From: Bispira polyomma
Taxonomy: Eukaryota
DNA length: 64,000 bases
Direction of reading: 5' to 3'
Assembly (NCBI GenBank): GCA_965649765.1
Contig: OZ287758.1
Span: forward strand, 21,328,001 to 21,392,000
Each line of letters begins with the position of its first letter. Position 1 is the first letter of the stretch. The notes under the pieces are model-generated. The model did no database searches, was not told the DNA's origin, and saw only the letters and a program-made list of their open reading frames with translations. This document shows, in pieces, positions 15,638 to 56,784 of this stretch. A program made the translations under genes and the position numbers.

Positions 15638-16891
15638 ATGGGGAGGACGTCTGAAAGGAAATTAAGACACACTAAGAAGACCCCAGCTACTGAAGGCAGT
15701 AAGGCAACAAAGAAAGGTACAGCAAAGAAAAGCAAATTGGGTAAGAATACTCGCATTGATGACAGTATCATAACTAACCCCAGTAGCCTCTTTGATCAAG
15801 CTGAGGCCGACCACGTGTCTCCATCTACCCGATCTCGGCGTCCGAACCCCACCGGATCATCACACCAGGCCAATGAAATGCTAACCATACTAAGGCGGCT
15901 TGAGGAATCTAACGCGCTACTCACCCATAGGTTGGATCGAGTAGAAGCTAGAGACTCGACTGCTCAGTCAGCATCTCCTTGCCTAAATCCCACACGTTCC
16001 GCTCACCAGGTCGCGTTGGGTAACGACATCACGGCTCAGCCACACCTCTCAGCTCCAGGTTCCATGACGAATCCTAGTCACTCGTATCCACAGGCACCGC
16101 TGTCGATCAGTACCACGGCTCAGCCACACACGTCAACAGCCAGTTCACTTAACCGGGTCGACTACACAACTGATGCAATCGTTCCCAAAGCAGACATCCT
16201 GAAGACGTTGCCAGACATACAGGCAAGGGTCAACGAGAGGCTAGCCGAGTACAACCTCCAGGCCCAGGCCGTATTTACCCAAGGTAAGGCTGCTCTCAGA
16301 CAGAAGTCGGGGAGATTTAATACTACAGACATACCGAACAGCAACCCGAAGACTAGGTGGGCAAACGAGGGGTGGACGGGTACTTCTTCGCGTAAACGAC
16401 CACCTTATGATGACTTGTCGCTTCCTCAGTGGGCATCTGGCCAGTTGGCCAATGCTCTCCAGGTCACGGACCCTCTGATCTCGAGAGAAATTATACAGCA
16501 GGTCGTTCTATCCCTCAGGGACGCCGCGTCACTACCATGGGAGGTCGTCCGAACGGCCTGGGCGTTAAACATGACCGAGATTGAAGAAGGTAGACTGTCC
16601 TGGGGGGACACAACGCAGTGGGCCCTCAACAGGCTCAGTGCGTCACAGCTAGCTATGGTGAATTCTAAAACCACCAATGCTTCATCTACTCACGTCGGAT
16701 CAACAGCCAAGGTTATTTGCAAACTGTATAACTCCGGAAAGTGTTCGCATAAAGCAGATCACAGCCAGTATAAGCATGTGTGTTGGCACTGTGCTACCGT
16801 GCTTCACAAAGACGTATACCACCCAGAATTTAAGTGTTATAAGTCCAACTCAGCTAAACAGGCAGAATCAGGCTCTTCTTCTACCCACTAG
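15638..16891 (+). CDS. gag: Gag-like ORF1 of element 1 (417 aa)
   Basis: Basic N-terminus, coiled-coil-like MLTILRRLEESNALLTHRLDRVE, and a C-terminal Cys/His cluster CKLYNSGKC...HVCWHC...HPEFKC typical of DIRS-order ORF1. Confidence 0.88.
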   Translation: MGRTSERKLRHTKKTPATEGSKATKKGTAKKSKLGKNTRIDDSIITNPSSLFDQAEADHVSPSTRSRRPNPTGSSHQANEMLTILRRLEESNALLTHRLDRVEARDSTAQSASPCLNPTRSAHQVALGNDITAQPHLSAPGSMTNPSHSYPQAPLSISTTAQPHTSTASSLNRVDYTTDAIVPKADILKTLPDIQARVNERLAEYNLQAQAVFTQGKAALRQKSGRFNTTDIPNSNPKTRWANEGWTGTSSRKRPPYDDLSLPQWASGQLANALQVTDPLISREIIQQVVLSLRDAASLPWEVVRTAWALNMTEIEEGRLSWGDTTQWALNRLSASQLAMVNSKTTNASSTHVGSTAKVICKLYNSGKCSHKADHSQYKHVCWHCATVLHKDVYHPEFKCYKSNSAKQAESGSSSTH

Positions 16892-16910
16892 GACATTGAC
16901 CAACTACCAG

Positions 16911-19900
16911 GACTAGGGCCATCTTGTCATAACAGTGAAAGTAAGAATAAGTTAGAAGTATATGTAAAACAGAATTATGAAGACCAAGACATAACTAAAG
17001 CAGATAAGCATATGGTTTCATTGTTAAATAAGATGGAAAGTAATAATTCGTATATTTTTTCAAACAAACCTAAAAATGTTAATGTGAATGTATTGTCACA
17101 TGAAAGTGAAAATGTAAAAAATGTACACACTGTTAAACCGGAAATGTGTAAACCTAGCTTGTCAATCAGTACTGACAAAAAGAGCATTGATGATAGCCAT
17201 ATTGCAGTTAAAAATTATAATGTCATTAGATTGCCTAACAAATTTGGAAAGATAAAAAATTCATGCACTGCTAAAACGGCAATGTGTGATCCTAGCTTAA
17301 CAGTTAGTATCGACAAGAAGGTTAATAATAGTGAACCTATTGGGGTCAAGAAATGGAATGTTCAGCAATATATCAGGGCCAGTGTACTGGACTCGAGTAC
17401 CAGTACTAGAATGTACACAGATGACAGTTGTGGTCAATTCACCAAATTTGGGGGGTTTTCTAAAAATAAAGGTGATATTAAGATAAATGGTCTAGATAAT
17501 TCACACAGCGAAGTCCCTGTATTTTGGGGAAACAGAAATATTGGTGAACATTCAGAAAGAGAGAATAAAAGAAATTTCACAGTTAATGCTGATTTATGTA
17601 ATGCCAGCAGTGTTAATGCCAGGTATGGTACCCCAAATGAGACAAAAGTAAAAGTTACCATCTCTACTACTAATTGGTTGTTTTGCATGCCTCACATTAC
17701 ACAAGGAATGCCTGTGGTTTTTGTGCAGTCTGAGCTGCCACATGTTTCTGGTTTTTACACCTCATGGGATGAGGATTTTGGGACAAATTTCTACAGATGT
17801 AAGAACCCACCAACTGGGGTAATGTCAGTGACCAGCATAGTCACAACTCAAATAGCTTTGGCTAATTTTAGGGATGATTTTCAAAACAGCAACAAGGTTG
17901 TAACAGTTACTGATGATGACAAATGTAAAGCTAAGGATGCTTGGCATGATTTTCAAAAAGAAATGTATTGCAAAAACAATTTCAAAAAAGGTTATACAGA
18001 ATATGTAACAAATATCATTGACGAAATGTTGTTAGACATAAATGTAAATACAACATGTGTTGTCAGTAATGACAGACCAATGGAGGTTCAAACCTGCCAT
18101 AAAGGTAAAGTAGCGTCGTGCGATCTCTTCTTCCAAACTTTTGGACATTTCTCACAAACTACCACAAGTGCCACCATAGTGGATAAGGATATTAATTTCC
18201 CCAACAAAACTAAGGGTTTCTTGGCAATCTCAGAAACCAAGTTTAGTTTTATAGGACCTGACAGGGCCCCCATACACATTACTTCAATTAAGGAAATGTC
18301 TGAAATAGCACAAACCATTAGGGATACGGGATGTCCCAATTATAAGGGAGCAAGGATCCCCCTGGTATCAGGTCTTAACACCAAAGCATGGGAGGAAGTC
18401 CTTTCAAATTACCCAGATGAACTTTTACTACAATATATCAAGTTTGGTTTTCCCCTTTCACTTACTTGTCCAAAGGATTTAAAGGTCAAGGATACCATCA
18501 ATCACCACTCTGCACTTGAATTTAAGGACCACATAAGGCAATATTTAGAAAAAGAGAAACAATGTGGGGCCATGTTAGGACCTAGTTTAGACATTAAGGA
18601 TGAATTATTTCACTGTTCTCCACTGCTCACCAGACCTAAGGACAATTCCAAAAGGCGTGTAATTTTAAACTTGTCTCACCCCAGGGGGGAATCACTTAAT
18701 GACAATGTCAATAGGAAACAATTCGATGGAGTGGACTTCACCTTAAAATTTCCCACAATAGACGATATAGTAGAACAGATTCGTAAAACACACACTCCAC
18801 GTATCTTTAAACTGGACGTCGCGCGCGCTTTTAGAAATTTGAGGGTGGACCCAGTCGATGCCATGAAATTAGGAATCAAATTTGACGACCATAAGTACGT
18901 TGATCCGGCGGTTGCGTTCGGCTGGGTCCACGGCTCGGCTGCTTTTCAGCGTTGCTCGGATGTTATAGCACACACCATGGAGAAGCACAACCATAAGATC
19001 TTCTGTTATATCGACGATTATGTAGGCGTTTCTCCAGACTCGGAAGCAGAAGAAGCTTTTAACCAATTATATGAACTGGTTACCAAACTTGGTTTTCCGT
19101 TAAACCCAGAAAAAATTTCAAAACCAAGTTCAAAAGTCACCTGTCTTGGCATAGATATCGACATTCAGGCAGGCACTATAAGTATTACTCCCGAAAAAAT
19201 ACAGGAAACATATAACCTCTGTTTAGAAATAGTTAACAAAGTTTGGATATCTAGAACTAAATTTCAATCAATATTGGGAAAATTGCTTTACATCCATAAA
19301 TGTGTAAAGCCTGCTCGAATGTTTATAAACAGACTTCTTATGGCGTTTCGGAATAACAGTCAAGCTAAACGATTTAAAATTTCGCATGACATGAAGGCTG
19401 ACTTATTATGGTTCGTACAATTTCTACCACGCTATAATGGTATTACGTTCATCGATCCGGTAATTGCTAAGCATAAGGACGAGGTTTTTATTGATGCATG
19501 CCTCACTGGCCTAGGGGCCATCTACACCAATGAGGTTTTCGCTACCCCATTATACAACATCTATAATAGGGCTTTATCTATCGTGCATATCGAAATGCTT
19601 AACATTCTATTAGCTTTAAGGGTCTGGGGTGAGCAGTGGAGTCATAGACGTATAATCATGAATTGTGACAACATGTCCGTTGTCCTGGTAGTTAGGTCCA
19701 ATAAGACAAAAGACGATTTTCTTGCTTTATGTTTAAGGAATATCTGGCTAATCTCGGCTGTACATGATATTACAATCGAGATTCAGCACATTAAAGGTAA
19801 AGACAATGTAATTGCTGACCTCCTTTCAAGACTTTTTTCTGAGCAACCCCCCCATAAGGGACAGTTGGAAATATTAAGGGATTCCTGTAAGTGGCACACC

Positions 19901-19939
19901 ATTCCACTCCAGTACTTTAACCTAGACTTAAATATATGA
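16911..19939 (+). CDS. pol: Reverse transcriptase/RNase H ORF2 of element 1 (frame open from 16892; first ATG 17012; start given is the predicted splice acceptor)
   Basis: KRRVILNLS, KLDVARAFRNL, FGWVHGS, YIDD; RNase H DACLTGLG...EMLN...CDN...ADLLSR. No methyltransferase domain seen. Confidence 0.92.
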
Positions 19940-20925
19940 TTTCAGGATCAAACCACATCACACAAAGATTCACAGACTCAGCATGGCAGAGGATTGACTG
20001 TGCTTTGCGTCCAAAGACTACACAGACTTACAATACCCAGTTTAGAACCTTCATCTCATTTACTTGCTATGCTGGAATAGAAGAAATTACCACACACTCA
20101 TTGATTGCATTTCTAGAATACTTGGTACAAACAGGGGCGTCACCCAACATGGTTAATAACCATCTTGCAGCCATTAAACATATGGCCAAGAAGTTGTACT
20201 GGGATACAAAAATTTTTGAAAACAATACAGTGTCTATGTTTACTAGAAGCTTGACACATACATCACCATTTAGACCTTCACCTAAAGGAATTTTCCACAT
20301 TGAACACTTATTACTGATCTCCAAAGCTTGTGATATTTTAAGAGACCCACCTCTATATAGGGCCATTTTCATGCTAGCTTTCTTTGGATTCTTGAGAATA
20401 TCCAATATAGTCCCTCACTCCAGATCCAAATTTGATCCAACTCGTCACTTTCTAAGGAAAGATATAATCTTTGGCCACCCAGGTGCACACTTGATCTTGA
20501 AGTGGGCAAAGAATTTACAAATTAGATCACAGTTTCACATTATACAGATACCCTTACTGGACAATGTTTTATTATGTCCAGTCAAGGCCATACAGACATT
20601 ATTGAAATCTAGACCTCTGTCACCTGATGCCCCACTTTTCGTCAGTAATACTTACCCACACTATCCAATTGTAGAAACACATGTGCGTTCTGCACTAGCT
20701 TCAATACTTACACATGTGGGAATTCCCACCAAATCACATAGTTTCCACACATTTAGAAGATCAGGGGCAACATATGCCTTTAATAATAACGTGTCACTTC
20801 AAAACATCATGGCGCACGGCCTCTGGAGGTCATCTGCAGTCTGGTCATATTTGCATCAGAATTCTCAAGCAATTTCTGCTGTCCCTCTCACTTTCGCCTC
20901 CTCTCTATCTAAACTTCCTTCCTAG
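19936..20925 (+). CDS. Tyrosine recombinase ORF3 of element 1 (329 aa)
   Basis: Catalytic set: R (FLRISN), HxxR (HTFRRSGAT), HGLWRS and Y (VWSY). Confidence 0.93.
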   Translation: MISGSNHITQRFTDSAWQRIDCALRPKTTQTYNTQFRTFISFTCYAGIEEITTHSLIAFLEYLVQTGASPNMVNNHLAAIKHMAKKLYWDTKIFENNTVSMFTRSLTHTSPFRPSPKGIFHIEHLLLISKACDILRDPPLYRAIFMLAFFGFLRISNIVPHSRSKFDPTRHFLRKDIIFGHPGAHLILKWAKNLQIRSQFHIIQIPLLDNVLLCPVKAIQTLLKSRPLSPDAPLFVSNTYPHYPIVETHVRSALASILTHVGIPTKSHSFHTFRRSGATYAFNNNVSLQNIMAHGLWRSSAVWSYLHQNSQAISAVPLTFASSLSKLPS

Positions 20926-22689
20926 TTTGGCTTGGGTGATTTTAAAATTACCTTGTATTTTAATAATTTATACCTATTTTACACCTACCTGTATATAGAT
21001 TTACTAACATGTACAGAATTTAAATAAATTCCTCAAACCATAGTTTCACTGTCTTCTGCTATACTTACCAGACTATCTTTCCACTACAACTTACCTTCTT
21101 TCCATTATACCAAGTAGAACTGCGGTCAAAATCAAGGTTAAAAAAACCAAAAAAAAACAACAGCCACCTGACTCCGCTATCTAACCAGGGACTATAAACA
21201 CAGTTTACCACAACTGTTTCTTAAATAAATTTAGCTCTGCAACTGTAAGATCAGCTTCTTAATTCAACATAAAGTTGACATAAAATAAAAGCAGTGATTT
21301 CAAGATACACTATATTGCAATAAAGTCCAAATTGTACATCTTATCGCATTAAATCTTGAACTGCAACTGTGACTCAACTGCTACCTAAATATATAAGTAC
21401 ATTAAACATATACTCTAGCATTCAATCGGACAATTTAAATCCAGGATATCAAAACCAAAATTGTAATACAAATTAAATCACATGGAATCACAAGCAGAAA
21501 AAGTACATGTAGAACATGCAAGCACCATTTAAGTAAATGCTGTGTCCAGCACAGTTACAATAAATACATCGTGACTAAATATTACATAAATATATCACTA
21601 ACTACCAAACTTGATGCACGTTTAAATAACATAAATTTAAATAACAAATTAAAGTGCTCACAAATGTCATGGGATATAATCTCCCGAAATGATATCTACT
21701 CACCGAATGATTTATAAGTAAACAAGGTGATTTAAGGAATAATTTACTCAGACACTATAAATATTACTTTACCGGTTGAGTACAAAATATTGTGCAAATA
21801 TTACTTTTCCTAAAAACAAATGCACTTAGTAATAGTCAACTTAATTACAGATCTGAAGCAGTCATATATATAGCAGTAATGCAGAGTCTAAATTACCATG
21901 CAGAGTTAATTATCACAATTATCATGCAAAAACAGTAAAAGAAATAAACCACTTGTCCAGCTCAGTCCACTTAACTACAACACTTATCAATAGTCAACAA
22001 AACTCAATCCAAATTCCAGCTTTAATCAAATCTAAATGTGGTGAAAGATTATCACTTCAAAAATTTTGCAACCCTGTTCGCTTTCGGCAGAATGTTCCAT
22101 TAAACAAACATGCCCAACTTTCCAACACAAACTAAACACACTTAACGGTAGACAATACAGTGCTGAAGGACATCACGATAACGGTCTCTTAGGCTGTAAA
22201 TAGTTACACAAAGGTATCTGGCGTGTCTATATATTGGTATGATTACAAAGACTGCTATTTTTTACCATGAAAATGTTTTTTTTTTGCATATGTACATACA
22301 ATAAATAAAATAAATAGATATATTGAACATACATAGATAATAAATAAAAATGTTAGAAATATTTATTTACTCACCTACATTTTGCAACCCCCATCACCTT
22401 TGGACCAAAAATTAATCAATTTTAGGTCAAACCTGAAAAAAAACGGGTCGAACGATCTGAGAAAAAAACGGGTCGAAACATCTGGATATCGTCACAATTG
22501 TATATTTGCTGCACCTCATTTTGTAAAAGTAGGCTATAATCTTTGACTAAGTCACTGATGCTAGTAAAGTTGTGGTTTTTGGAGATATCAAAAGCCTTGT
22601 TTAGGGGTTTTCCAGCCACTGTGATGAATTTTTTACACAGAAGCTTTTCATGCAAAATTGCAAGATAGTCTTTTGGTTTTACTAAAAAG

Positions 22690-24538: not shown

Positions 24539-27144
24539 ATGGGCTGGCAACTACCAATATTTCTTTCTTGCTTAGTAGTAGTTGCTGTGTATTTTGTATT
24601 GATGAGTCAATTAGTTATAGATGACACCAGATATCAACACACAGGTTAGTGTTTGCTATTTGCTAAATAATTGCCATTGTGCATTAACAATAAATAATTT
24701 TAAATGCATGCTGTTTCAGTGAAACATTATAGTAAATGGACTACACGAAGTGAACTAAGAATTACTTCAGAAAATGTTTTCTTTTTCTTTTGAGGCATTG
24801 ACGTCTGCTTAGAAAGTGTTTGTTTTAACAGTTACACATATTGGTCCCCTTAGCCATATTAGTACATGAGTTAACAGTTCAATCTATACATTCCACAGGA
24901 TAGTCATTGATTTTGTACAAAAATGGTAAAAATGTGCATTCCACAGTCCAGGTCATTGAATAAATGTTTATGCAAATAGGTTTTGACATAATCTTTTGTT
25001 TTAAATTCATGTTTGTACATTTTTTTAGAGTCATAATATTGGTTTTGATATAAGATTTTCAGACCATTCATTTTAATTAATTACCGTGTATTTATTCAAT
25101 ACTTTACTAATATCAATAACTTCACGATTTATGAATGTTTAACTGTAGGGTTGGTTAACCTATGTGTATACCAAGTTGGTTAAGTACACATGTATGGGCA
25201 AACTCGGATAGATAAAGATGATATATGTTACACAAGATCAAAAGTAGTTTTTCAAAGTAATTTATAAAATGGCAAATCCTCATGAGGATATCGTCCCATC
25301 CATCATTAAAGATACCACTTGGAATTCTGGCAATACACGATATAGTTCCCACATTTATTTTTTTATTAAAAAGAATAAAATCTGTTACCACTAGCGATTT
25401 TTTAAAAATTTTGTTCTCTATTGTACAGTAATATACCATATTTTGCGTTGCAAATTGTCATATATGTAGAAATAATGATTCGTAATATCTGGTGTCAAAA
25501 TTAAGCCAAATAATTGAACTTTGCTGTATAAAATATCTTCGATTAATAATTTAAAAACCCTTTTATAATTACTTATACGTTATTTTTATTTAAAATAAAT
25601 CTTTTAATAACATATCACCCCTTTTGTTATGTACATTGGGGCGTGGGCATGAGTTATTATTAGTTAAACTTTGCTGTTTTCTTAATGAGAATGCCATACC
25701 TATGTAATGTGTTTACTGGAGTATCTCTCAATGAGAATGCCATACCTCTGTAGTCTGTTTACTGCAGTAACTCCCAATGAGAATGTCATACCTGTGTAGT
25801 ATGTTTACTAAAGTATCTCTCAATGAGAATGTCATACCTGTGTAGTTTACCTCTGACTGAATGCAGTTATATAAAGTTCTATGTTCTCTCACAGAGATCC
25901 AGCCAGTGGTGACGACTAATAATACATTTGCTGATGCTGTTGCTGATGCTGCCACACAACAGCAGAAACAAAAGTGCAGCCAACATCACCATGTGTTCTA
26001 TCTGAAAGTATATAAAACGGGCAGTTCAACATTTACCAACATCTTAAACAGAAAAGCACTCACTCATAATCTCACCATTTGTAGAGTTGAAAAGGGTCCA
26101 TATTTGCACCCACATCTACTAAAAATGAACAGAACTGATTTTGAAGATCACATAAACGATGAGAAGTACAAATGTGATATGCACACCAGTCACACTAAGT
26201 ACAATTACAGCATGATTCACCAAGTAATGCACAAAGACACTATCCTTGTAGCAACATTGAGATATCCTTTTGACAACTTCAGATCAAGCTACTATTTTTT
26301 TCAGAGGAACAGACAGCATTTGAGAGTCAAAGCAACAGGAGATCCTATTGAGAAAATGCTTAAAGATAGTACGTATAGTGCTGTGTCTAAGAGATACCAG
26401 TTCGGAGGTAAATATGAGTTTTACAGGAATATAATGTACAAATATTTTAAATTTAATGACAGAAAGGCCGGAATGCACAAAGATTATCTGCAAGAAAGTT
26501 TTGCTCAAATTGCCAAACAGTTCAAGGCCACTATTCTGACTGATTGTTTTGATGAAAGTCTTATTCTTTTTAAAAGAATGGTGTGCTGGCAGACGAAAGA
26601 TATTGTATACATCACGCATAAAAATGCAACTTCTCTTAGATATATGAAACAAGCACAAGAATATGGTCCTTTATTGTTAAGACATAGGAATATATCATCA
26701 GTAGACTATGAATTATATTCCTATTTTCTTCAGGTTCATCAGCAACGTGTCACCGATGCTGGAATTTCTTTCGTTCGAGAAGTTAACGATTTTAAAAGAA
26801 TTAATGCAGATGTAAATAAATTCTGTTTGACCATTTTTGCAAAGTTTAATTATGGTACAGCTCAGCTGAAAATGTTAATGAAGAGAAAGATTGTTATTGG
26901 AGAGGGAGAGTTTACCAAACAGTTTCCTATAACAGGTGGAGATTGTTTGTTAATGTCGCTAGCAGGTGATAGGCTAAATGATGCCATCAAAGCCATGAAT
27001 TACCCTCTATCTTGTAATAGCAAAGCTTCTACGGTTCATGTGAATCAAGTGTTTTGTAATTCTAATGAGGATAACTTTATTTATAAGAATATCCCAATTC
27101 AAATGTTAAAGAGTATATTAAACGATCTTCGGTTACTATATTAA
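24539..27144 (+). CDS. Galactose-3-O-sulfotransferase-like type II membrane protein, 451 aa; join(24539-24644,25895-27144)
   Basis: Exon 1 encodes a signal-anchor (MGWQLPIFLSCLVVVAVYFVLMSQL) with a phase-1 GT/AG intron. 5'-PSB-like FYLKVYKTGSSTFTNIL, 3'-PB-like LRYPFDNFRSSYYF, plus FDESLILFKRMVCW and DYELY. Confidence 0.82.
25684..25845. repeat. 46-bp minisatellite, ~3.5 copies, in the sulfotransferase intron
   Basis: AATGAGAATGYCATACCT starts at 25684, 25730, 25776 and 25822. Confidence 0.85.
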
Positions 27145-29150: not shown

Positions 29151-29382
29151 TGCACAGCAGGACCCTTTAGGGGCCTGATACTTCAGTCCACTTACAAACC
29201 TTTTAACTTTCATCACAACCTTAATTTCGGTTATACCAACAATATATGTAGCTATTTACTGGGCTACTAGCCAATCACAGCCCACACACTTGTTGTTTAG
29301 GCTTCACTTTCCAAATCACCATTTTGAATCTACATTCAAGCTATAGAATTCAAAGCAACAACAAGTGAAAACTATTTTATGA
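29151..29382 (+). repeat. Split direct repeat A1
   Basis: Identical to 34775-35006. Contains AGCCAAT and CCATTTTG, both also present in the element 1 leader. Confidence 0.95.
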
Positions 29383-29468
29383 AATAAATGGATTGTATTT
29401 ATGTGATTTTATTATTTTAACTTGGGTTTTATGACACATTGTGTGCTACATATTGTGAATCAATCGAC

Positions 29469-30854
29469 ATGGGTCGTACTAAGAAAACGCCCACACACAG
29501 CTCCGTTAAAAAATCGACCAAGAAACCACTTACAGCAAGAAAGACAAAGGAAAGGCAAGTAGTTGATTCTCTCGTCTTGGACCTTGACGGTCAGTTATCA
29601 CAGGTAGTGGGCCCCTCTAGTACTGACAATTCTTTTCAACAGATACATAGCGATGCCTCGCCAATGATGCCGACTCGGGGGCCCCTACTTAGGCCGGGTT
29701 CCGACACAACCAGCAGCCAGAATTCTGACCAAATGCTTGCCATTCTCATGAGGCTTGAAGCCTCTAACGCCGATTTAGCTGGCCGTTTGCAGAAAGTAGA
29801 GCAACAGGCATCGACTAACGCATCCATGTTACCTACCTCATCCCTCCTCAGGACGGGTCACACACCGGCCATCGGGCAGATGGGAACCACAGCTTCCCTT
29901 AACGTCCACGGTACACCTGCATACAACCAACCTGCTACAGGCCACCACGGTCAGATCGCTGCCGGATCACTACCACAGACGGGTTACCCCCCTCAACAAC
30001 CAGCACAGGGTAACGCTGCGTTCGCGCTTCCCACTCAGTCAGGCAATATTGCATCAGCTTATATGCAGAACGCTACACCAGACATCCCCGTAGCAACACA
30101 CACGGGCTACGCGGGTCACGATTACCAACGGGACGGGATCGTGCCGAATCTAGATGCTTTAAGAACCTTACCGCACGTCCAGGCGGAAGTTACCAGACAG
30201 CTTGCTCAGTATTCAGCACTTGCACAGCGAGATATAACACAAGGTAAGGCATCTCTTAAGCATAAATCGGGTCGGTTCAATAACACAGACGTCACTTCCA
30301 TGGATCCCAGGCTAAGGTGGCCTAATGAAGGGTGGGTAGGGGGTTCTTCAAAGAAGAAGCCAACGTTCGACGAACTCACACTGCCGCAGTGGGCTGCAGG
30401 GCAGCTCGCTAACGCTTTATTAGTACCTAACCCTGCTGAAATGAAGGACATGGTAAGACAAATAATATCAGCACTCAGAGATGCTTCATCTCTGCCGTGG
30501 CACGTTGTCAGGACAGCCTGGGCTCTCAGTATGCACGAGGTGGAGGAGGGCCGGCTGTCCTGGCAGAACGACACCCAATGGTCACTGAATAGGCTCAGTG
30601 CTTCCCAGTTAGCCATGGTCAACAGTGCAAACGTAGGTACAAGCAACAGCAATTCTAGCAACGACTCTAAACTTATTTGTAAGTTATATAACAATGGTAA
30701 ATGTACCCACAAGTCAGATCACGACAAATACAAACACATCTGTTGGCATTGTAGCCGAACCCTGGGGAAGGACTCCAACCACCCCGAATTCAAGTGTTAC
30801 AGATCCAACAGTAAACAGCTGGACACTCAGGTAAACCAAGGAAAGCAAAGCTAG
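29469..30854 (+). CDS. gag: Gag-like ORF1 of element 2 (ATG 29469, MGRTKK...)
   Basis: Homologous to element 1 ORF1: MGRT start, coiled coil, KSGRFN.TD, LRDA.SLPW and the Cys/His tail. Confidence 0.88.
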   Translation: MGRTKKTPTHSSVKKSTKKPLTARKTKERQVVDSLVLDLDGQLSQVVGPSSTDNSFQQIHSDASPMMPTRGPLLRPGSDTTSSQNSDQMLAILMRLEASNADLAGRLQKVEQQASTNASMLPTSSLLRTGHTPAIGQMGTTASLNVHGTPAYNQPATGHHGQIAAGSLPQTGYPPQQPAQGNAAFALPTQSGNIASAYMQNATPDIPVATHTGYAGHDYQRDGIVPNLDALRTLPHVQAEVTRQLAQYSALAQRDITQGKASLKHKSGRFNNTDVTSMDPRLRWPNEGWVGGSSKKKPTFDELTLPQWAAGQLANALLVPNPAEMKDMVRQIISALRDASSLPWHVVRTAWALSMHEVEEGRLSWQNDTQWSLNRLSASQLAMVNSANVGTSNSNSSNDSKLICKLYNNGKCTHKSDHDKYKHICWHCSRTLGKDSNHPEFKCYRSNSKQLDTQVNQGKQS

Positions 30855-30873: not shown

Positions 30874-33593
30874 GAGAACGAACTATAGTTAAAGATAATT
30901 GCAAAGTAGAAGTAAGAGACGAGCATGATAGTAACATTAAAATTGTAAAAGGTGAGCTTAAATCTACTGGTGTTGATAATATACTGTGTTATGGTAATGA
31001 GAACAATGAACATATTAACGGAAATGAGAACATAATGCAAAACAATGTGAACAAAACGTACTCTGGTAATTCCACAAATGTTTCAAATAAGGGCATGGGG
31101 ACGGAGTACAACTGTATATCAGAGCATTATGACTTATTTTTGTATGACAGTGCACAATCCACATGCAGTGGAAGTAGAATGCAGTACTGCAACAGCGAGT
31201 TAGCTGGTTATGTTAATTCCCAATACTATGATGGTAATTCTAAAGAAAGAGAAAGTAAAAATCAGATAGAAGTAACAGTCACTGTCACCAATTGGCAACA
31301 TTTTTGTAAAAAATGGTCCGTTTGGGCTCCAATAGTATTCTTAAACTGTAGCTGTAATGAAATTGAAGGGTTTTACTACATATACCATCATAGTGGGGAC
31401 AATGAAATGAAATACATGCCTGTGTTTAATCTACCTCAAGGAGATCTGCAGGTCATACACAGATATGTCACAGCCATATATTATGATCTCACAGATAGAT
31501 GCAAAAAATTACTAAGTAAGGTTAATCAGTGTAATGCTGAGGATATTGAACAGGCAGCCAATGTTTTCGACAATTTCAGTAAAGATGAAAAGTGTTACAA
31601 ACAGTATGGCTGCGACTATTCTGAATATATAATGAATATTATTGATATTATGTGTGATGATAACTGGAAAGTAGATGACAATGCAAGCAGTGCAGACAAA
31701 TTCAATGTAAATACTGCAGCTGGACACGAGACTCCAAGGAGTGTGCCCTGCGATGAAATATACACATGTCCGATTCGCGATTTCTTCTTCAGAACTGACA
31801 GGGTCAATGCCGGCACCAGTAAGAACATTAAGGAAAATTGTCATTTCGCCCAATCAGGAAAATCAGTGGGATTTATTCCATTATCTTCCACAAAATTTCA
31901 CTTTATTGGTCCTGATCAGGAGCCAGTAAAAGTTGATTCAGTCGGTAAAATGGAAAAAATTGCTGCTATAGTTAGAGGCACGAATCTCCCTAATTATAGG
32001 CAGGCTAGAATTCCTTTAATTTCGGGATTACACCACACAGCGTGGGAGGAAATGCTTACTGACTATTCGGATCAGCTATTAATACAATATATAAAATTCG
32101 GGTTTCCTTTATCTCTCACAGAACCAGGGAAACTAAATAATTCAAAAACTGTCAACCATTACTCTGCTTTGCAATTTACGAAAGAAGTCGGGCAATATCT
32201 TGAGAAAGAAAAGTCAATGGGGGCGATGTTAGGCCCAGTTAAGCAAGTGAACTCACCACACTATCACTGCTCACCCCTTTTAACCAGACCCAAAGACACA
32301 GACAAACGTAGGGTCATTTTAAATCTTTCTTATCCACCGGGGCAGTCACTAAACGAGAATGTAGACAAAGCACTGTTCGATGGGGTCAAATTCATATTAA
32401 AATTTCCTACTATTGACGACATCATAGAGGCCATTCGGAATACTCATGATCCAGTGCTGTTCAAGATCGACGTGGCCCGAGCGTTCCGTAACTTAAGAGT
32501 TGATCCAGTTGACGCACTGAAACTAGGCATACAATTCGCTGAAGGGCAGTACATTGACTCTGCGGTCGCGTTCGGGTGGATACACGGAAGCGCGGCTTTT
32601 CAGCGTTGTTCTGATGCCATAGCAGCCTATATGTCGGAACGCGGCTTTAGAGTATTTTGCTACATCGATGACTACATATGTGTATCTACTAGAAGTAAGG
32701 CTGACACGGGTTTCCGTATTTTGAAAGATTTATTGCTTAGGCTAGGTTTCCCAATTAACGATGATAAGCTTACACCTCCCACAACTCGCCTTACATGCCT
32801 AGGCATAGACTTTGATATTACTGCCGGCACTATTAGCATACAGGAAGACAAACTTATAAGCATAACCAAAATGGTAAATGACACCTCTCAAAAATTGCAC
32901 ATTTCACGTACTCAGTTTCAATCTTTATTAGGAAAATTATTATATGTTCACAAGTGCGTGAAACCTGCCAGAACTTTCATAAATAGATTACTTCAAGGTT
33001 TCAGAAGTGATCACAATGCCAAAAAAATCAAAATTTCTTCGGAAATGCGCCATGACATCGACTGGTTTCAAAAATTCTTACCTCAATATAACGGGATCTC
33101 ATACATTAACCATAGGGACATTTCCCATATGGACGAGTTACACCTGGACGCCTGCCTATCAGGTTTAGGAGGTGTCTGGAACAGAGAAGTGTACTCCACA
33201 CCATATTATAATGTTTATCAAAGAGAGCTTACCATAGTGCATATAGAGATGCTGAACATTGTCCTGGCTTTAAAAATTTGGGGTGAAAAATGGGCTCACA
33301 GTAGACTGATAATTCACTGTGACAACATGGCCGTCGTACTGGTTGTTGAAAGTCAGAAGACGAAAGACGAATTTCTAGCATTATGCTTAAGGAACATTTG
33401 GCTACTTATAGCCACATATGACATTAATATTAGCATTAAGCACATTCCAGGCAAGGAAAACATAATAGCAGATGCCCTTTCTAGAATTTATTGCAAAACT
33501 CCTCCCAGCAGGGACATGTTATATAATTTATACAACAATTATGTTTGGAATCCAGTACTCATACAACATTTTGACCTAAATTTTTTAATATAA
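30874..33593 (+). CDS. pol: Reverse transcriptase/RNase H ORF2 of element 2 (frame open from 30855; first ATG 31035; start given is the predicted splice acceptor)
   Basis: KIDVARAFRNL, YIDD, DACLSGLG, CDN and ADALSR. Confidence 0.92.
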
Positions 33594-33599
33594 TTACAG

Positions 33600-34576
33600 G
33601 TGCTACTGCCATTACTCAGAAACTCATCACTTCAGCATGTGGAAGGATTGACACGGCACTTAGACCAAAGACTTCTTCTGCTTACGAAAATCAATTTAAG
33701 ACTTTCCTGGCTTTTAATGTATTTGCAGGCATTGCAAATACTTCGGTTCATTCAGTACTGGCCTTTTTGGAATATTTGACACAAAATAACATTTCCCCTG
33801 CTGCGGTGTCAAACTACCTTTCTGCTCTAAAATTCATGGCTAGAAAGTTCAATTGGGATTTAGCTCCATTCAATCACAATTCTGTTGCATTATTCGTCAG
33901 AAGTATGACAATTAATTCACTATTTCGTCCCAGACACAAGGGATTGTTTGATATCGCACAGCTAGCACAGATTTCCATAGCATGTTCTATTCTAGATGAC
34001 CCAATATTATACAGATCCATATTTATGGTGGCCTATTTTGCTTTTTTGAGATTATCCAATATTGCCCCTCACTCAAGGGCCACATTTGATAGAACTAGGC
34101 ATTTTCTCAGACAGGACTTAATTTTTGGGCATCCTGGGGCTCACATCATCCTAAAATGGGCAAAGAATTTACAAAATAGGACAGATACACATATAATACA
34201 AATTCCAAAACTACAAAATAAGACTATTTGTCCAGTATTGGCATTACAAACCTTACTAGCTTCCAGGCCCCTTCCTCCTGCTGCACCACTTTTTGCAGTA
34301 GCTGGTACACCACATCACACCATAGTACAAACACATGTAAGGACAGCTCTGGAAAAAGTCTTGACACACATTGGAATACAATATTCTTCACATGGATTCC
34401 ATACTTTCAGACGTTCTGGAGCTTCATTTGCATTTAATCATAATGTATCCCTACAGAATATAATGGCCCACGGGCTTTGGAGATCATCTTCAGTTTGGGC
34501 TTACCTCCAAAAAACCTCCCAGGCTGCATCAGTCGTGCCTCATACCTTTGCCTCTTCTATTCCTTCTTCTCTGTAG
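33600..34576 (+). CDS. Tyrosine recombinase ORF3 of element 2 (no N-terminal ATG; frame open from 33575)
   Basis: GATAITQKLITSACGRIDTALRPKT aligns with the N-terminus of element 1 YR. FLRLSN, HTFRRSGAS, HGLWRS and VWAY are present. Confidence 0.9.
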
Positions 34577-34582
34577 TTGGGC

Positions 34583-34774
34583 TTGGGGCTTAAAATTTTC
34601 TGAATTTTAACCATTTTTACACTTGTTTTTCTGTACATATACCATTAACATGTATATATAAAATAAAGCTCAAACTGAACCGGTTTATTTACTTACACAA
34701 AACATCACACGTGGCTTAAAATCCATTACTTAACATCTTGAACCCAACTTACACCTTGTAACTTAAGTGGACTG
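34583..34774 (+). repeat. Split direct repeat B1
   Basis: Identical to 35765-35956; contains AATAAA; abuts A2. Confidence 0.95.
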
Positions 34775-35006
34775 TGCACAGCAGGACCCTTTAGGGGCCT
34801 GATACTTCAGTCCACTTACAAACCTTTTAACTTTCATCACAACCTTAATTTCGGTTATACCAACAATATATGTAGCTATTTACTGGGCTACTAGCCAATC
34901 ACAGCCCACACACTTGTTGTTTAGGCTTCACTTTCCAAATCACCATTTTGAATCTACATTCAAGCTATAGAATTCAAAGCAACAACAAGTGAAAACTATT
35001 TTATGA
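34775..35006 (+). repeat. Split direct repeat A2
   Basis: Identical to A1. Confidence 0.95.
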
Positions 35007-35174
35007 CCCACCTCCTCCCCTATGACCACAGCCTAGTGCTTGACGAATAATCAGCGACTTAAGCTTTATGTTTTCTTTAATATCATGTCACGACAAAGTG
35101 AATAGTCCACGTGGAAATACGGGCAAGTCACTACTATATTGGAATTGTAATTCGGTCGTTTCCAACAGGGAACT

Positions 35175-35358
35175 CGGCAACAGAGCGGACGGCGAAGGTT
35201 CGAGCCGGTGGCCGTGTGAAGGGGGGATCCTGTCTCTTATGCCTCCACTGGGTCATATAATGCATCGCCAGGAGGGGGTATGACAGGCAGGATTTCCCCT
35301 TTGCTAGGTGGTTGGTGCCCTAGGCCATCGGTTCTAACGTTAGCCTGAAGCGCATGCC
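35175..35358 (+). ncRNA. Candidate structured RNA motif in the A2-B2 spacer
   Basis: 12-bp stem 35202-35213/35323-35334 and 17-bp stem 35219-35235/35285-35301, with G-U pairs valid only on +. A homologous covarying motif lies at 54972-55132 (minus). Confidence 0.65.
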
Positions 35359-35764
35359 AATGGATGAAATTGAGAAAATTACTTGTGGTATCTTAGTAAA
35401 TAATGTTAAATACAAGCATATAAACTGAGAGTGGTTGTAAATATTAACCAATAATGAGAGAGTTTCTAACAATTAGCTATGTTGAACTTCAGTAATGATA
35501 TAAATGTGGTATATGGACTGTTTATGGCCACTGATGATGTAATTTATGTGTCGATTTATGCAAGATTTATTGTTTTATGTGTAACTTTTAGTATCTACAT
35601 ATTTCACTATATGGCTTGAAAGGTAACAAAAATGATACCAGTTTTAAGGTGTACTCTTACGTATATTGTATAATTATTTAATGGCTAGTCCGCATATTTT
35701 TATGTATTTATTATTGGCTAGTCCTTTACGACTTAAGTCTCTGTTAGTCGTTAGTCCTCCTTGA

Positions 35765-35956
35765 TTGGGGCTTAAAATTTTCTGAATTTTAACCATTTTT
35801 ACACTTGTTTTTCTGTACATATACCATTAACATGTATATATAAAATAAAGCTCAAACTGAACCGGTTTATTTACTTACACAAAACATCACACGTGGCTTA
35901 AAATCCATTACTTAACATCTTGAACCCAACTTACACCTTGTAACTTAAGTGGACTG
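35765..35956 (+). repeat. Split direct repeat B2
   Basis: Identical to B1. Confidence 0.95.
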
Positions 35957-37267
35957 GTTACTGTAGTCAAATGTATGATAACTAAGTAAAATGAATTTCA
36001 TTAAACCTATCATTTGTTGTTACTTGCGTATTACAGTTATGGATTTTGTTTTATAAATGTTATTTAGTTCACTGTTAATTTTTAAAATACATCTGAATAT
36101 CCTGAACCATCATTACATGTATATTCTGTTAAGGTTCCATGATACTATATATATATATATATATAAGACAGGTGACATAAAACCTGATCAGTTAGCTGAT
36201 GATGTTTACATATATATATCAGTTTGCCTACAATAAGACAAAATTGACCAAGGACTTTTCGTGACACAGAGTTTATCCTATATTGGCAGAATAGATTTTT
36301 AAAGGGTGCGGAGCTCTGGTAATCAGACATTGAGCATGTGGTCACTTACTACAAGGTCATAAAGTTATCACTTATCCCACGACTTCTATGTGTGAGAAAA
36401 ATTATTTTTGGTAAATTATCAGTTTGAAAAACATTGTGAAGTGGAACCTCATTTTCTCAGTAAAAGCTTTATTCAAGGTACACCGTGTAAAGGTTTAATA
36501 TCAGGTAAGATAAATAACATGATATTAACCCTTTCGATCCCTAAGTTGTCGGCAAGCAGTCAACAGCATTTGTTACTCCCAGAACCTATGTCTGTCGTCA
36601 ATCAGTCGAAATCCCACAAATATTTTTTTAAATTTTTACTCATTTTCTCACAATAGAAAATTATTTGTACAGTAGAATCGTTTCCTTAAAAAATTATGTA
36701 TAAGGCTGTCATTAAATTCCGGAAGTAGTCAGTGGTGTGTGTTAGTCTCCCCAGATTTCTGTAACCTATTATAAATTGCTTTAGTTTCCGGCGATATTTT
36801 TCTCTTGGGGTTAAAAGTGAAAAACACTTTAGAAATACATTATAAAAGTATGAAATATAAAAACATCACAATACACTGTATATTTTGGCTTATCAAACAC
36901 AATCACAAACTATATGGACAACAAATACAAATTGTATATAGTTTAAGTTATAACAAGACTGCTTTTAAGGGTGCAGAGCTTCGGTAATTAGTCATTTGTA
37001 CATGTGGTCATCATGTAGCTGTAGAGTTATCACTTGATCACATGACTTCTTTGTGCTAGATTTTTTATTGTGGGTAAGTTATCAGTTTGACAAACCTTGT
37101 GCTCTGGAATTGACTATGTGTCCCACTGTATGATAAGATATAAGGTGTATGTACAGAAGGTGTATTTAAGTCAAGTCATACAACACTATCATCACTACTC
37201 ACAAAAGGTTGTATTATACAAGAGGAAACTATTTATAAAATCAGTAAATTCACAATAAATAGCCAAC

Positions 37268-51900: not shown

Positions 51901-54900
51901 ACTGTCGTATTGTTTTCATATTTCATGATATAGTATGTATTTCTGATAAAACTAGACTTCATATTTCTTGTTTTAGCAAATATTATGAAATTACATTTTC
52001 TTAATCTACAGACAATAGATGTTTTGGTGCAAATCACAGCTCAACATTATGGCTGGTATGAATTTCGTCTTTGTGCAGTCAATGACAAGGATGTGTAAGT
52101 TATAAAGGCTGATGTTTTCTTTTTATGTTTTTCTATAACATCTAAATCATAGGAAATGGCAGTGGAGGACACGAGTTCAATTCTTGCCTGAGGAGCTCAG
52201 GTTTATACAGATACACAGTGTCTGGCACTTTAAGCCCTCTGTAATTAGGTCTAACCCCCACTGGAAAGCTAACATAGATTAAAGACATTGATCAATAATC
52301 AACCCAAGCCCTCTGTCTAAGAATTGTAGAAACATTTTTACTGGGTGAATTTAGTATATGTGTGTTAATGGTAACGATAAAAGAACTTTCGACAGTGAAA
52401 AAATCCAGCATGTGTGTACTTGTTGGATGATTTGTACCAACTCTGATTATTGCCACTGATCAGATATAGCATGGACAGTTTAATTGTTACAAAATCATTG
52501 TGAGGTAATGTTGGTATTGTGTTTTTTATGTTGGATCAATACCTGTTTCATGTTGCAATTGTGTGATCGTTTTAATTGCATTGCCTCTGGACCAACCCCC
52601 GAGGCAAATAGTCCACTGTCACTGACACAATATCATATACTACATCAGACCTTTTACTTTAAGCTTGTCAACATCTGAATATATTGTATGACACACTCCA
52701 TGTTTTTATTTTACAGGACTGTGACGTGGGAGTGTCTAAATCAAAATAAGCTTCACTTCGCTGACGGCACCACCCGTTACTACATTCCAGATGGTGTGGG
52801 AGTTGCCAATACTTCCTTGAGCCTTGAGATCCCTACTGGGATGACATGTTCTCAGTGTGTACTGCAATGGATGTGGCACTGTGGTAAGTTGGACCTTTGA
52901 TTGAGGACAGAAAAAGATTCATATTTATGTAGGCTGTGCACCAGTCAAGACATGGTAGACACCAAGAATGAAGAGTAGGGGATGTCTGTTTGAAATATTT
53001 TGGGGCCTCAGAAATAGCGATCACCGGGCTTCAGAGTAAGCACAGACAACAGGATGGATTATGCGACACATATTGACATAATTACTATGATGATAGGATT
53101 AAATACACAATTTACAATTAAAAATGCATACTTCATGTTAAACACATATTATCAGACATATTTGTACAAGAACATGTATTGGTAAGTGGGAATATACACC
53201 TCCTCAGCTGGGCCACCATCATTAGGCATCTTTATTAAACTATTTTATACATTCTTTCATTATTTGTACAATTGCTTTCCTTTTTTACCCAAAGGCTAAT
53301 ATCTGATTGCTTGAAATTACAGTACTATATGTTACAGTATTAGATAATTGTGGCTTTAACATCACTCAAAAGACATTACCAGAATAATCTATATAATAAT
53401 CACTAGGTTTTATTATTTGCATCAGCCACTGTTGTCTTATGTAAAACACCTTTGTTTATTTCATATCAAGGTGGGCTATTCACTAGTGCTAGGTTTTGTG
53501 CTCTACAAACTACAATCCTTTGGCAATTATATGCCAACTTTCTGAGATACATACCACGGAATAGATTATAAATCTACAACTGCGGATGTTGGAGGCGATT
53601 TTAAACTGAAAATAATCTCATCGAATTGTGTGATCTACCATGTAATGGGTACTCTTATTCAATTTGTGTGCACTTTTATTACATTTTACTTACTATACCC
53701 CTTATTATCATACCAAATACAAGACAATATTATATATCTTAATATATAAATCTCTACCTCTAGGTAACAGCTGGAATACATTTCCCAATGGAACTGCCTG
53801 TACAGGATGTGGACCCCAGGAACAGTTCTATGGCTGTGCCGATATCACCATTTTGGGGAATGGGGAAACGGTTCCTACCACTGCATCTGTAAGTTTGACA
53901 AGTAAGGAAAACAAAAGTGGAGTTATGAGCATATACATGTACTGTTTTAAAAAACTGACTCTTGAAACCCTTAATTATGTCCTACATATTGTTGAGCCAA
54001 TTACTCTTGCATCCCAAACAATTGTAGCGTAAAATATGTACTGATGCATAATCGAGGATATAATCAGTAGAAAAAAATAGTAGCCACAAGTATAATTGTC
54101 AAAGACATTACATAACATGATTGACAGTTTTAGGCATTGCATATAATGACTTACTTCACATATTGACTGTAACATCATCACCGATGAATCAGTTCAAACT
54201 AATTAACGAACATTAGGTGTGAGTATAACCTCCTTGATGGAAGTAATGACGATGCTAGGCTGGGGAGGCTTTTGGATTTTCATCATGTGTAGCAATAGAT
54301 CATTAGCTGATTATATATAATGTAAAGTCATTTTTTTAAGTATGGCTTTCAACATATCTAATATCAATCCCAATGGCCTGTTCACTGATGAACGAAATCC
54401 AAGCAGGATTGTTGGTCATGGTTTCCTGCACGACAATTCACTGGCCTTCTACAAGTCTACTTCCAACTTTCCCACATACATGGCGGACCGAAAATTACAC
54501 CCACGACTGCACAGGTGTAAGCAGCACCTTAGAGGATTCCATAATCAGTTTGGCTATGTAAACATGCCGGGACCAGAAAAAAAAAATTTTTTTATAAAAG
54601 TTTACACATAGCAGGAGTCACTAAAACACACACCACAGACTACAACCGGTATTCAATAATGGCCTCAGTTTCCTAAGTGAGTATGAGTTGACACTGAGGT
54701 AAGTGGTAGGTCAAATGTGAATACTATTTTGTTTGGAGAAGTTTATTCTATACAGGTAGGTAAAAGTACTTTAAAATTTAATTTGTAAAATTTTAAAATA
54801 TTCCCATAACATGACTATTATGTGAAACAATACTGTGAGTAGGACTAGACTGCACCACATGAAATAATACAATTCATAAATGTATATAAAATAAATCCCT

Positions 54901-56784
54901 GTGATATAACTAAGAATAAATTTCGCCACATCAGAGTAAAATAAAGAGGTAGTATATGGTGTATCCACCAAAGCCACTCCACGGTTGAAACCCGGGTCCT
55001 ACGGCACCTAGTCGCCTAGCAGTGAAGGTTCCCAACTGCAGAGCTGAATTCCCCGGTAGCCCACACCAGGGGAAAGATGCAGCTGGGGACCAGCACCACA
55101 CGGATCTGGGTTCGAACCACCGGCAGTGGCCCGCTAGTTACATACGTATACCAATTCAACCACAAAATACATGTAAAGTAGATAAAAGTGAGTAAAATAA
55201 CATATAAAGTAAGTAAACTTGAGGTGAGTAGGGGAAGGAAGGTGGGAATTTAAAATTTCTTGATGTTTACTGTTGAATTACTTAATTCAATATGGTGGAA
55301 AGGGGGATAAATAAGTCAAAGCAGAGAGGGCCCCTAATTGGGTGCCACAAAGGGATAGAAAGATGAAAGGAGCGGATACCTAAACTAATTAAGGTAGTGT
55401 TAAATAAGAAGGAGGGGTTTTAGGAACTGAACTATTAGACCCCTGTTGGGTCATGATGTGCACACGTATAATTTTTTAAATGGGAAAGTCTGCTGTACTA
55501 ACAATTTACTTGGCTGAGGAACTGAGGGAAAATAGAATAGTATTTTGGGGTGTCGATGGTTTGCCGACAAACATAGGGTTTGAGTTTGAATTTTGATGTT
55601 TAACGTCCACTCTAGTACCTTTTAGTTAGGTTATATTGGAACGGATAGTTAGAACACTGGAGGAAACACTGCATACAGTTGATCAACATATGGGAGTAAC
55701 ATATGATGTCTACTGCTAGCCGCCAACATTGGAGTCAAAAGGAGTAAACCATGACAATTGATAAAAAAGGTTTATTTCTAGACTATCCCCACATCTACAG
55801 AGTCTACCACAACGACGACAACGAGCACCACCGCAACTACCACTACTACTACTACTACTGCACCAGGATCTACAACTTCTTCATCCACTGGTGGAGAGTA
55901 AGTAGATCCAGAATTACTAAGGAGCAAGATGTTCTTGTTTCTAAGTGCATGTATATTTGTCTATCCTATGGAACATTCCTAACATCTCATTAAATTATAC
56001 CTAGAATATTTTTAACATGTCATTAAACTTTACATTGATAACTTTGTTATTGAATGTGATGTCCACTATATTTAAAAAGCGTACACTAAATTAATGTCAT
56101 AAAAAGAACCATATAAGGAATGAGATATCAAATATAGTTATACAAACTGTAATTGCAGTAGTTTAGGCTCCTTGTCCTTGGAGCCTCGGTTAATGTACTC
56201 TATTTTTACTGACAGAACACTAATGGGTCCTAAGCTATACTGACGATCAATAATATGGTATTTCGATAAGCTTACATTGATATTTATATAATTCATAAAT
56301 AGTTTATACTAAAGCCAAAAAATACCGGCTATAGAGAAAGTAGAAAATACAGTAATTCCGGTGTTTCAACTTATATTACACAAATATGTCCAACAAATAA
56401 AAAAATTCATATTGAAAGACAAGAACCACCATTGTTGACTATGTAATCAGACATGACATCAAATCAAATTACTTACTTTACTCAGCAATAATATGAAAAA
56501 GATCACCTCTTCTGATTCAATTGAACTTTTTTTGCATTAAGTCTATACTTTTGGATATTAAAGTGTCACTTACTGAATCTATTCAAGTACATATGCCAAT
56601 GGGAATTAATGTAGAGTAAGAAATGATAATACCTATTCATGGTCAATGTCTTTCTTTCTGTAGCTGTGTGTGGGTAGGTGGTTCAGATGGAGATGATGAA
56701 TGGTGCCAGGAAAGCTGCAACCATGTTCCTCCGCACTGTCCATCAGACAAGTGTGACTGCGATGGAGCTCTGCATCTGGGTTAG
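48979..56784 (+). CDS. AA15-type LPMO paralog 4, 301 aa; join(48979-49146,50060-50185,52012-52094,52717-52883,53764-53888,55782-55897,56664-56784)
   Basis: HGRLLMPPSRASAWRYG, ITAQHYGWYEFRLC, GNSW...GCGPQEQFYGCADI, Thr linker, and CVWVGGSDGDDEWCQESCNHVPPHCPSDKCDC. Confidence 0.92.
51145..51550. repeat. Diverged direct repeat (~130 bp, two copies ~276 bp apart) in LPMO4 intron 2
   Basis: AAGATCAGTGA...ATCAATACTTCTAT...GTGTTTATCTGG...CCTTTTAGCTCATA at ~51181 and ~51458. Confidence 0.7.
54666..55462 (-). mobile_element. ORF-less A-spacer-B derivative of a third YR retrotransposon family, in LPMO4 intron 5
   Basis: The minus strand starts TGCACATCATGACCCAACAGGGGTCTAATAGTTCAGTTCC (A start), then CCAATTAGGGG, CCCACCTTCCTTCCCCTA (spacer start), the structured motif and CTAGTCCT. 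It ends in a B-like tract (TTTTAAAATT...ACCTACCTGTATAG...TTAGGAAACTG). Confidence 0.82.

Follow-up and report, generated by a model that had tools for sequence, protein, structure and literature searches.

A conserved three-way-junction RNA between the A2 and B2 repeats of Ngaro-like retrotransposons in Bispira polyomma: a putative cis-acting module

Structured RNAs are found in several kinds of retroelement. The retroviral packaging signal Psi, a part of the 5′ leader placed downstream of the splice donor, binds nucleocapsid. The constitutive transport element (CTE) of Mason-Pfizer monkey virus and the transport elements of IAP and MusD are cis-acting helical RNAs of at least 150 nt, located in the 3′ untranslated region. 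The 3′ stem–loops of LINE and R2 elements are recognised by the reverse transcriptase (RT) and shared with partner SINEs, with target-primed reverse transcription taking place at the 3′ end of the RNA. The msr/msd of retrons has flanking inverted repeats with a branching G and sits next to the RT, and ribozymes are known in other retroelement orders.

It is not known how tyrosine-recombinase (YR) retrotransposons select, prime, and copy their RNA (PMC7192593). For DIRS-1, a 3′ hairpin has been proposed as a primer (Poulter and Goodwin, cited in PMC7192593), which is, as far as the citing account describes it, short (4792–4805) and placed at the very 3′ end of the mRNA. Ngaro elements are laid out with split direct repeats, A1-[ORFs]-B1A2B2 (PMC8547959, PMC9210276), so that their 3′ end is drawn as B1A2B2 (PMC4157794, PMC8547959, PMC9210276), and they lack the methyltransferase domain of DIRS and PAT elements (PMC4157794, PMC9210276). 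A description of a cis-acting RNA structure in Ngaro elements was not found in the literature searched.

Here, we describe such a structure in a 64,000-nt stretch of DNA from Bispira polyomma (GCA_965649765.1, contig OZ287758.1, positions 21,328,001–21,392,000 of the forward strand)—hereafter the window, whose numbering is used unless a locus is named—and in the 1.03-Gb genome around it. The host of the structure, element 2 (Table 1), shows the split direct repeats of the published layout: A1 and A2 as well as B1 and B2 are 100% identical, and B1 abuts A2. No Pfam match to a methyltransferase domain was found in element 2, whose ORF2 ends 36 aa past the RNase H match; this fits Ngaro rather than DIRS or PAT, and the element is a Ngaro-like YR retrotransposon. 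It differs from the published Ngaro layout in the 758-nt spacer that separates A2 from B2. The longest ORF of this spacer encodes 71 aa (35068–35283) and overlaps the 5′ half of the structured region described below—here called the island. The Pfam Phage_integrase match in the window is ORF3 of element 1, and a protein homology search with the YR (ORF3) of element 2 found 215 homologues. The word AATAAA, present in B1 (34662–34667) and B2 (35844–35849) of element 2, lies in the middle of B in family F1 of element 2, in two subfamilies of its sister family F2, and in a third lineage, L090 (position 78–90 of B in L038, L043, and L090); L091 and L092 also carry it in their repeats, as judged by eye. 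As it occurs mid-B in every family examined, polyadenylation could take place in B1 as well as in B2.

The copy of element 1 in the window (15638–21122) stops 197 nt past the YR stop codon, after a single B-like repeat and without A2-spacer-B2; a second B follows after another 694 nt in at least one further member of that family (G000:C9:26660150–26661033). Between the two elements lies an intron-less ORF (25861–27144) with a galactose-3-O-sulfotransferase domain (Pfam E 2e-31).

Table 1 Features of element 2 and of the F2 unit near 55 kb in window coordinates
Feature	Position	Strand	Remarks
A1 repeat of element 2 (family F1)	29151..29382	+	100% identical to 34775–35006
ORF1, gag-like by position	29439..30854	+	Without Pfam match
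ORF2, reverse transcriptase and RNase H	31035..33593	+	Pfam RVT_1 (E 4e-10), RVT_3
ORF3, tyrosine recombinase	33767..34576	+	64.5% aa identity to ORF3 of element 1
B1 repeat	34583..34774	+	100% identical to 35765–35956; AATAAA at B1 position 80
A2 repeat	34775..35006	+	TATA-like and CCAAT-like words
A2-B2 spacer, 758 nt	35007..35764	+	AT-rich except for the island
Structured island	35185..35350	+	Covariance model R1 127.9 bits, E 4e-30; MFE -90.4, z -6.5
P1, 5′ strand, contains GGTTCGA	35191..35213	+	Fold and pair counts
P2, long hairpin	35216..35304	+	Base of invariant G-C, U-G, G-U, followed by covarying pairs
P3, short hairpin (UAGG..GGUGCC-N-UA)	35307..35321	+	Fold and pair counts
P1, 3′ strand	35323..35345	+	Fold and pair counts
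B2 repeat, end of element 2	35765..35956	+	AATAAA present
ORF-less A-spacer-B unit of sister family F2, 795 bp	54670..55464	-	Limits from 29 other copies
Island of the F2 unit	54972..55130	-	R1 180.4 bits; fold z -3.1 to -3.3

The island is the sole strongly structured part of the A2-spacer interval: in a sliding fold scan it reaches a z-score of -6.6, compared with -3.3 to +1.8 elsewhere. The segment 35175–35358 folds with a minimum free energy (MFE) of -97.3 kcal/mol (z -6.2), and none of 200 shuffled sequences folds as well. The earlier note on this DNA had described a three-way junction here, and this shape is indeed very stable in the fold of the 35 kb copy. RNAalifold likewise yields one shared three-way junction with 42 pairs, 13 of which differ in both partners between F1 and F2. 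The stems listed in that note pair as stated when checked by hand: P1 of element 2 joins GAGCCGGTGGCC with GGCCATCGGTTC (12/12 pairs, two of them G-U), and the base of P2 forms 17/17 pairs, including three G-U; in the second copy, P1 forms 10/12 pairs and CCCAGCTGCA pairs with TGCAGTTGGG at 10/10. That copy also folds on its own (54972–55140, minus strand: MFE -78.3, z -3.1). The island is a three-way junction with an invariant core, in which P1 ends in CC/GG, a 2-nt GU linker follows, P2 starts with G-C, U-G, G-U, and P3 starts with UAGG. The words of this core are real as well: the pattern CCGTGTG..TGCTAGG..GGTGCCNTAGG has 254 exact matches in the 1.03-Gb genome, whereas the reversed control has none.

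The conservation of this fold can be followed beyond the two window copies. Across 37 distinct copies, 96.2% of the cells in the paired columns do pair, compared with 31–47% when the partners are slid by one to three columns. In the same alignment, 15 pairs are changed on both sides, a number not above that of shuffles (145/500), and the covariation amounts essentially to one deep split—F1 versus F2. Further lineages were read by eye from matches to the junction pattern and its reverse complement, 80 nt each, giving at least six lineages (P2 types) with different stem sequences and retained pairing. All of these P2 types begin with the same G-C, U-G, G-U, and the next three pairs are then GUG/CAC, AAG/CUU, GAG/CUC, GUA/UAC, or AUG/CAU; in the middle helix of F2-like types, one pair is A-U or G-C and another C-G or U-A, while two further types have a wholly different, still complementary middle helix (all by eye). 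As to the strand, the shared structure holds 321 G-U cells compared with 29 A-C cells, which points to the sense strand, since decay by deamination would be symmetric. The earlier note had seen G-U pairs favouring the element's sense strand in both copies; the overall pair counts and the folding energies of the F1 island at 35 kb (-90.4 sense vs -54.1 antisense) agree with this, but the energies of the decayed F2 copy at 55 kb barely differ (-77.5 sense vs -75.8 antisense). Taken together, a conserved, covarying, sense-strand structure that belongs to the element, and not a chance hairpin, is supported.

A covariance model, which the earlier note had suggested as a check, was built from 17 copies (R1). 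It recovers both islands of the window—and, with filters off, matches nothing else there—and finds at least 150 matches above 100 bits in the genome; the first-look candidates number at least 128 for the F1 island and at least 664 for the F2 island. In 210 kb of fetched loci, R1 gives 70 matches, one per A-spacer-B unit, always at the same place, and none elsewhere. Most of 29 other F1 loci are full elements, and nine of the 29 are ORF-less A-spacer-B units of 1182 bp that start exactly at A and end exactly at B. At the end of some F1 elements, the unit is repeated in tandem as B-A-spacer-B-A-spacer-B, with a period of 1182 bp and an island in each unit (L003:909–3184 and L022; also L025 and L026 at G000:C3:22730814/22731995 and C10:2021637/2022821). 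About half of the F2 copies are directly preceded by a YR ORF with 60–62% protein identity to the YR of element 2, and in these YR-linked copies B1 and B2 flank the spacer. L090 is a third lineage, whose YR ORF lies directly before the unit and is 61–62% identical to both F1 and F2. The island holds the same slot, between A2 and B2, in at least three families of one clade.

Between families, the island stands out against its surroundings. L090 and F2 are 0.86–0.87 identical in the island, 0.65–0.66 in YR coding DNA, and 0.63–0.64 in B, and the flanks of their spacers are at the level of shuffled sequence; judged from these alignments, no non-coding piece other than the island is strongly conserved between families. 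In single loci, the islands L090:1501–1660 and L043:1513–1671 are 87% identical, and the F1 island is ~55% identical to both. F1 and F2 islands are likewise ~0.55 identical, with the fold and the junction words kept. The YR genes of F2 and L090 are, however, equidistant from F1. Since the F2 and L090 islands agree at 87% and those of F1 and F2 at ~55% for equal YR distance, this disagreement between island and YR relationships points to module exchange or very uneven rates.

Three public runs, stored as contigs, behave like DNA when mapped to 33000–36300, with a contig depth of 12–20 in the unique flank, ~360 in the element, ~3250 in the A repeat, and ~1230 in the bin of the island. The A repeat (34776–34997) thereby reaches ~9 times the depth of the ORFs and spacer, far above two copies per element. 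Three of ten deletion joints in these contigs break inside the island (34929>35248, 35281>35805, and 35310>35750), each at roughly single-copy depth. One contig of run X3, with a loose end at 35210, joins an F1-like P2 to a different 5′ strand of P1 (..GGCGGATTTGAACACGG) and may point to another lineage whose P1 is altered.

The module does not extend to all relatives. YR homologues at 46–64% identity all come from the ENA assembly ERZ22147071, from which 11 loci (L091–L101) in eight YR protein clusters were fetched, with YR proteins 52–64% identical to that of element 2. In these 11 loci, R1 with filters off gives no match and the junction words do not occur; several of them do have B1..B2 spacers, and no fold comparable in strength to the island was found in the three spacers scanned. 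A different, duplicated GC-rich hairpin of ~60 nt occurs in L091 (5322–5388 and 5468–5534) and in L100/L101 (~545–601 and 713–771 nt past the YR stop codon); it occupies the same B1-B2 interval, and the two families that share it keep it at ~80%, compared with 66% for the rest of their tails. The earlier attribution of the island to YR retrotransposons in general is not supported, given its absence from these 11 loci in eight YR clusters of ERZ22147071. Because related elements do without it, the island is not essential to the basic Ngaro mechanism; it is a lineage-restricted module, and other clades use its slot for something else.

The motif had not been recognised when first noted, and it has no counterpart among the RNA classes searched. 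No Rfam 15 family matches the window at gathering thresholds, and with E up to 10 the islands show only weak hairpin-type matches, the best being mir-504 (24 bits compared with a threshold of 57). In searches by eye, a primer-binding site complementary to a tRNA 3′ end was rejected, as no TGG-led complement was seen. The island was also rejected as the recombination site, which must lie at the B|A junction. The island is confirmed as a real RNA-level module that was found neither in Rfam nor in the literature searched, and it is a candidate for the cis-acting structured RNAs of retroelements.

As to that function, we tentatively favour a reading that falls somewhat short of probable: the island may be a structured RNA module that sits in the 3′ untranslated tail of one clade of Ngaro-like elements and acts in cis to mark read-through genomic RNA. 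Two RNA species are possible because AATAAA occurs in both B1 and B2—a short mRNA that would end in B1 and a read-through RNA that would end in B2. The B1A2 junction, the presumed template for rebuilding the element ends, would be present only in the read-through RNA, and the spacer with the island would likewise be carried only there. A protein-binding fold at this position could flag the replication-competent RNA, so that Gag or RT would package it or choose it as template, and ORF-less A-spacer-B units might be used in trans via the same mark. In such a placement, where only replication-competent RNA carries the structure, the island would resemble Psi; it differs in being a 3′ site downstream of an internal poly(A) signal. 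With the stem–loops of LINE and R2 elements, it shares a structured 3′ RNA that is present in autonomous elements and in ORF-less partners, but it lies 330–600 nt from the element end. With the DIRS-1 hairpin, so far as the latter is described in the citing account, it shares the retrotransposon order and the proximity to the RNA 3′ end, and it differs as a 160-nt junction with inherited sequence downstream.

The main rival is one that we regard as rather unlikely: the island could recruit a host factor as an export or stability element and let intron-containing full-length RNA leave the nucleus. Like the CTE and the IAP and MusD elements, it is mostly helical, measures 150–180 nt, and is located in the 3′ untranslated region, shortly before a 3′ repeat. 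Families with ~40% protein divergence share an invariant junction, which would suit an unchanging host partner no less than one encoded by the element, and relatives with unrelated GC-rich hairpin modules in the same spacer are reminiscent of export elements that are analogous without being homologous. No similarity to known export elements was found, the comparison covering position and shape, and the island differs from those elements in its three-way junction and its tyrosine-recombinase host. An unlikely reading takes the A-spacer-B unit as a transcription unit of its own or as a non-autonomous mini-element, in which A would provide the promoter, B2 the terminator, and the island the core of a short RNA—a hitch-hiker signal or a regulator. 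The TATA-like and CCAAT-like words of A, the frequency of ORF-less units (nine of 29 F1 loci, about half of the F2 loci), the tandem B-A-spacer arrays, the copy of element 1 that ends after B1, and the discord between island and YR relationships are all in its favour. Solo units are, however, also expected from recombination between A1 and A2—isolated AB repeats have been reported for Ngaro elements (PMC8547959)—and the contig depth of the F1 spacer is about that of the ORFs, meaning no excess of mini-units. Decidedly unlikely is the idea that the A-spacer-B unit may be a separate mobile module, a small circle riding on the Ngaro machinery, and the whole element a co-integrate of an autonomous unit with this mini-unit, joined at the B|A recombination site, with the island as the signal by which the mini-unit would capture RT or recombinase. 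This would explain why the islands of F2 and L090 agree at 87% while their YR identity is 65%, and it would likewise explain copies that end after B1, the tandem arrays, and the unrelated modules in the slot of relatives.

The remaining readings carry little of our confidence. That the island primes reverse transcription or serves as its initiation scaffold, in a retron-like way or by self-priming, is improbable. In favour of this, the fold is stable, conserved, and on the sense strand, and it lies close to the 3′ end in an order whose priming is unsettled—the earlier note was correct on this point (PMC7192593)—and for which a 3′ hairpin has been proposed in the case of DIRS-1, according to the same citing account. 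Yet the stretch that separates the island from B2 (414 nt in F1, ~166 nt in F2) is single-copy within the element and faithfully inherited, in F1 at 97–99% identity, and first-strand synthesis must therefore start 3′ of it; this makes the role of a minus-strand primer, as suggested earlier, unlikely. Close relatives without the island are moreover unexpected for a core priming device, and, other than in retrons, the YR gene and two repeats separate the island from the RT gene. Highly improbable is a DNA-level palindrome or decaying inverted duplication without RNA function: P1 of F2 does contain the perfect palindrome GGTTCGAACC, and the F2 copy in the window folds as well in antisense, but symmetric decay would not produce an eleven-fold excess of G-U over A-C, and the stems have changed in many lineages while still pairing, with the three-way shape and the invariant junction kept. 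A self-cleaving ribozyme of a new class, the suggestion of which found no backing, is barely plausible. A three-way junction with invariant junction nucleotides is also found in hammerheads, but no hammerhead core (CUGANGA, GAAA) was seen at the junction by eye, the ribozyme models of Rfam, the hammerhead included, give no match with E up to 10, and cleavage at the island would remove the inherited 3′ sequence. Least plausible of all is a captured tRNA-derived SINE or Pol III gene. The T-loop or Pol III B box of the earlier note survives as a word match—GGTTCGAACCC fits the B-box consensus, and the island shares the word GGTTCGANNCC with the head of tRNA-derived SINEs—but no further: ARAGORN finds no tRNA gene in the window, no model of the tRNA clan of Rfam matches at E up to 10, no cloverleaf was found, and an A box was not seen by eye upstream of the island in F1, F2, or L090. 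A T5 run directly 3′ of the island occurs only in L090 (L090:1661–1668) and is absent in F1 and F2. The word itself is part of stem P1, where both strands look T-loop-like because GGTTCGAACC is palindromic. An independently inserted SINE, which the earlier note had named among the cases against its reading, was not found either: all 70 inspected copies lie inside A-spacer-B units, at the same position in three families, and no free-standing copy was detected among the 70 R1 matches or, as an extra match, in the 210 kb flanks of the fetched loci.

Tyrosine-recombinase retrotransposons are the least understood retroelement order. With its invariant junction and numerous natural compensatory variants, this well-defined, abundant fold of ~160 nt offers a handle on them for binding, probing, and reporter work. 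The A2-B2 interval, which is usually drawn as empty, appears in these elements as a slot whose conserved functional modules vary from clade to clade.
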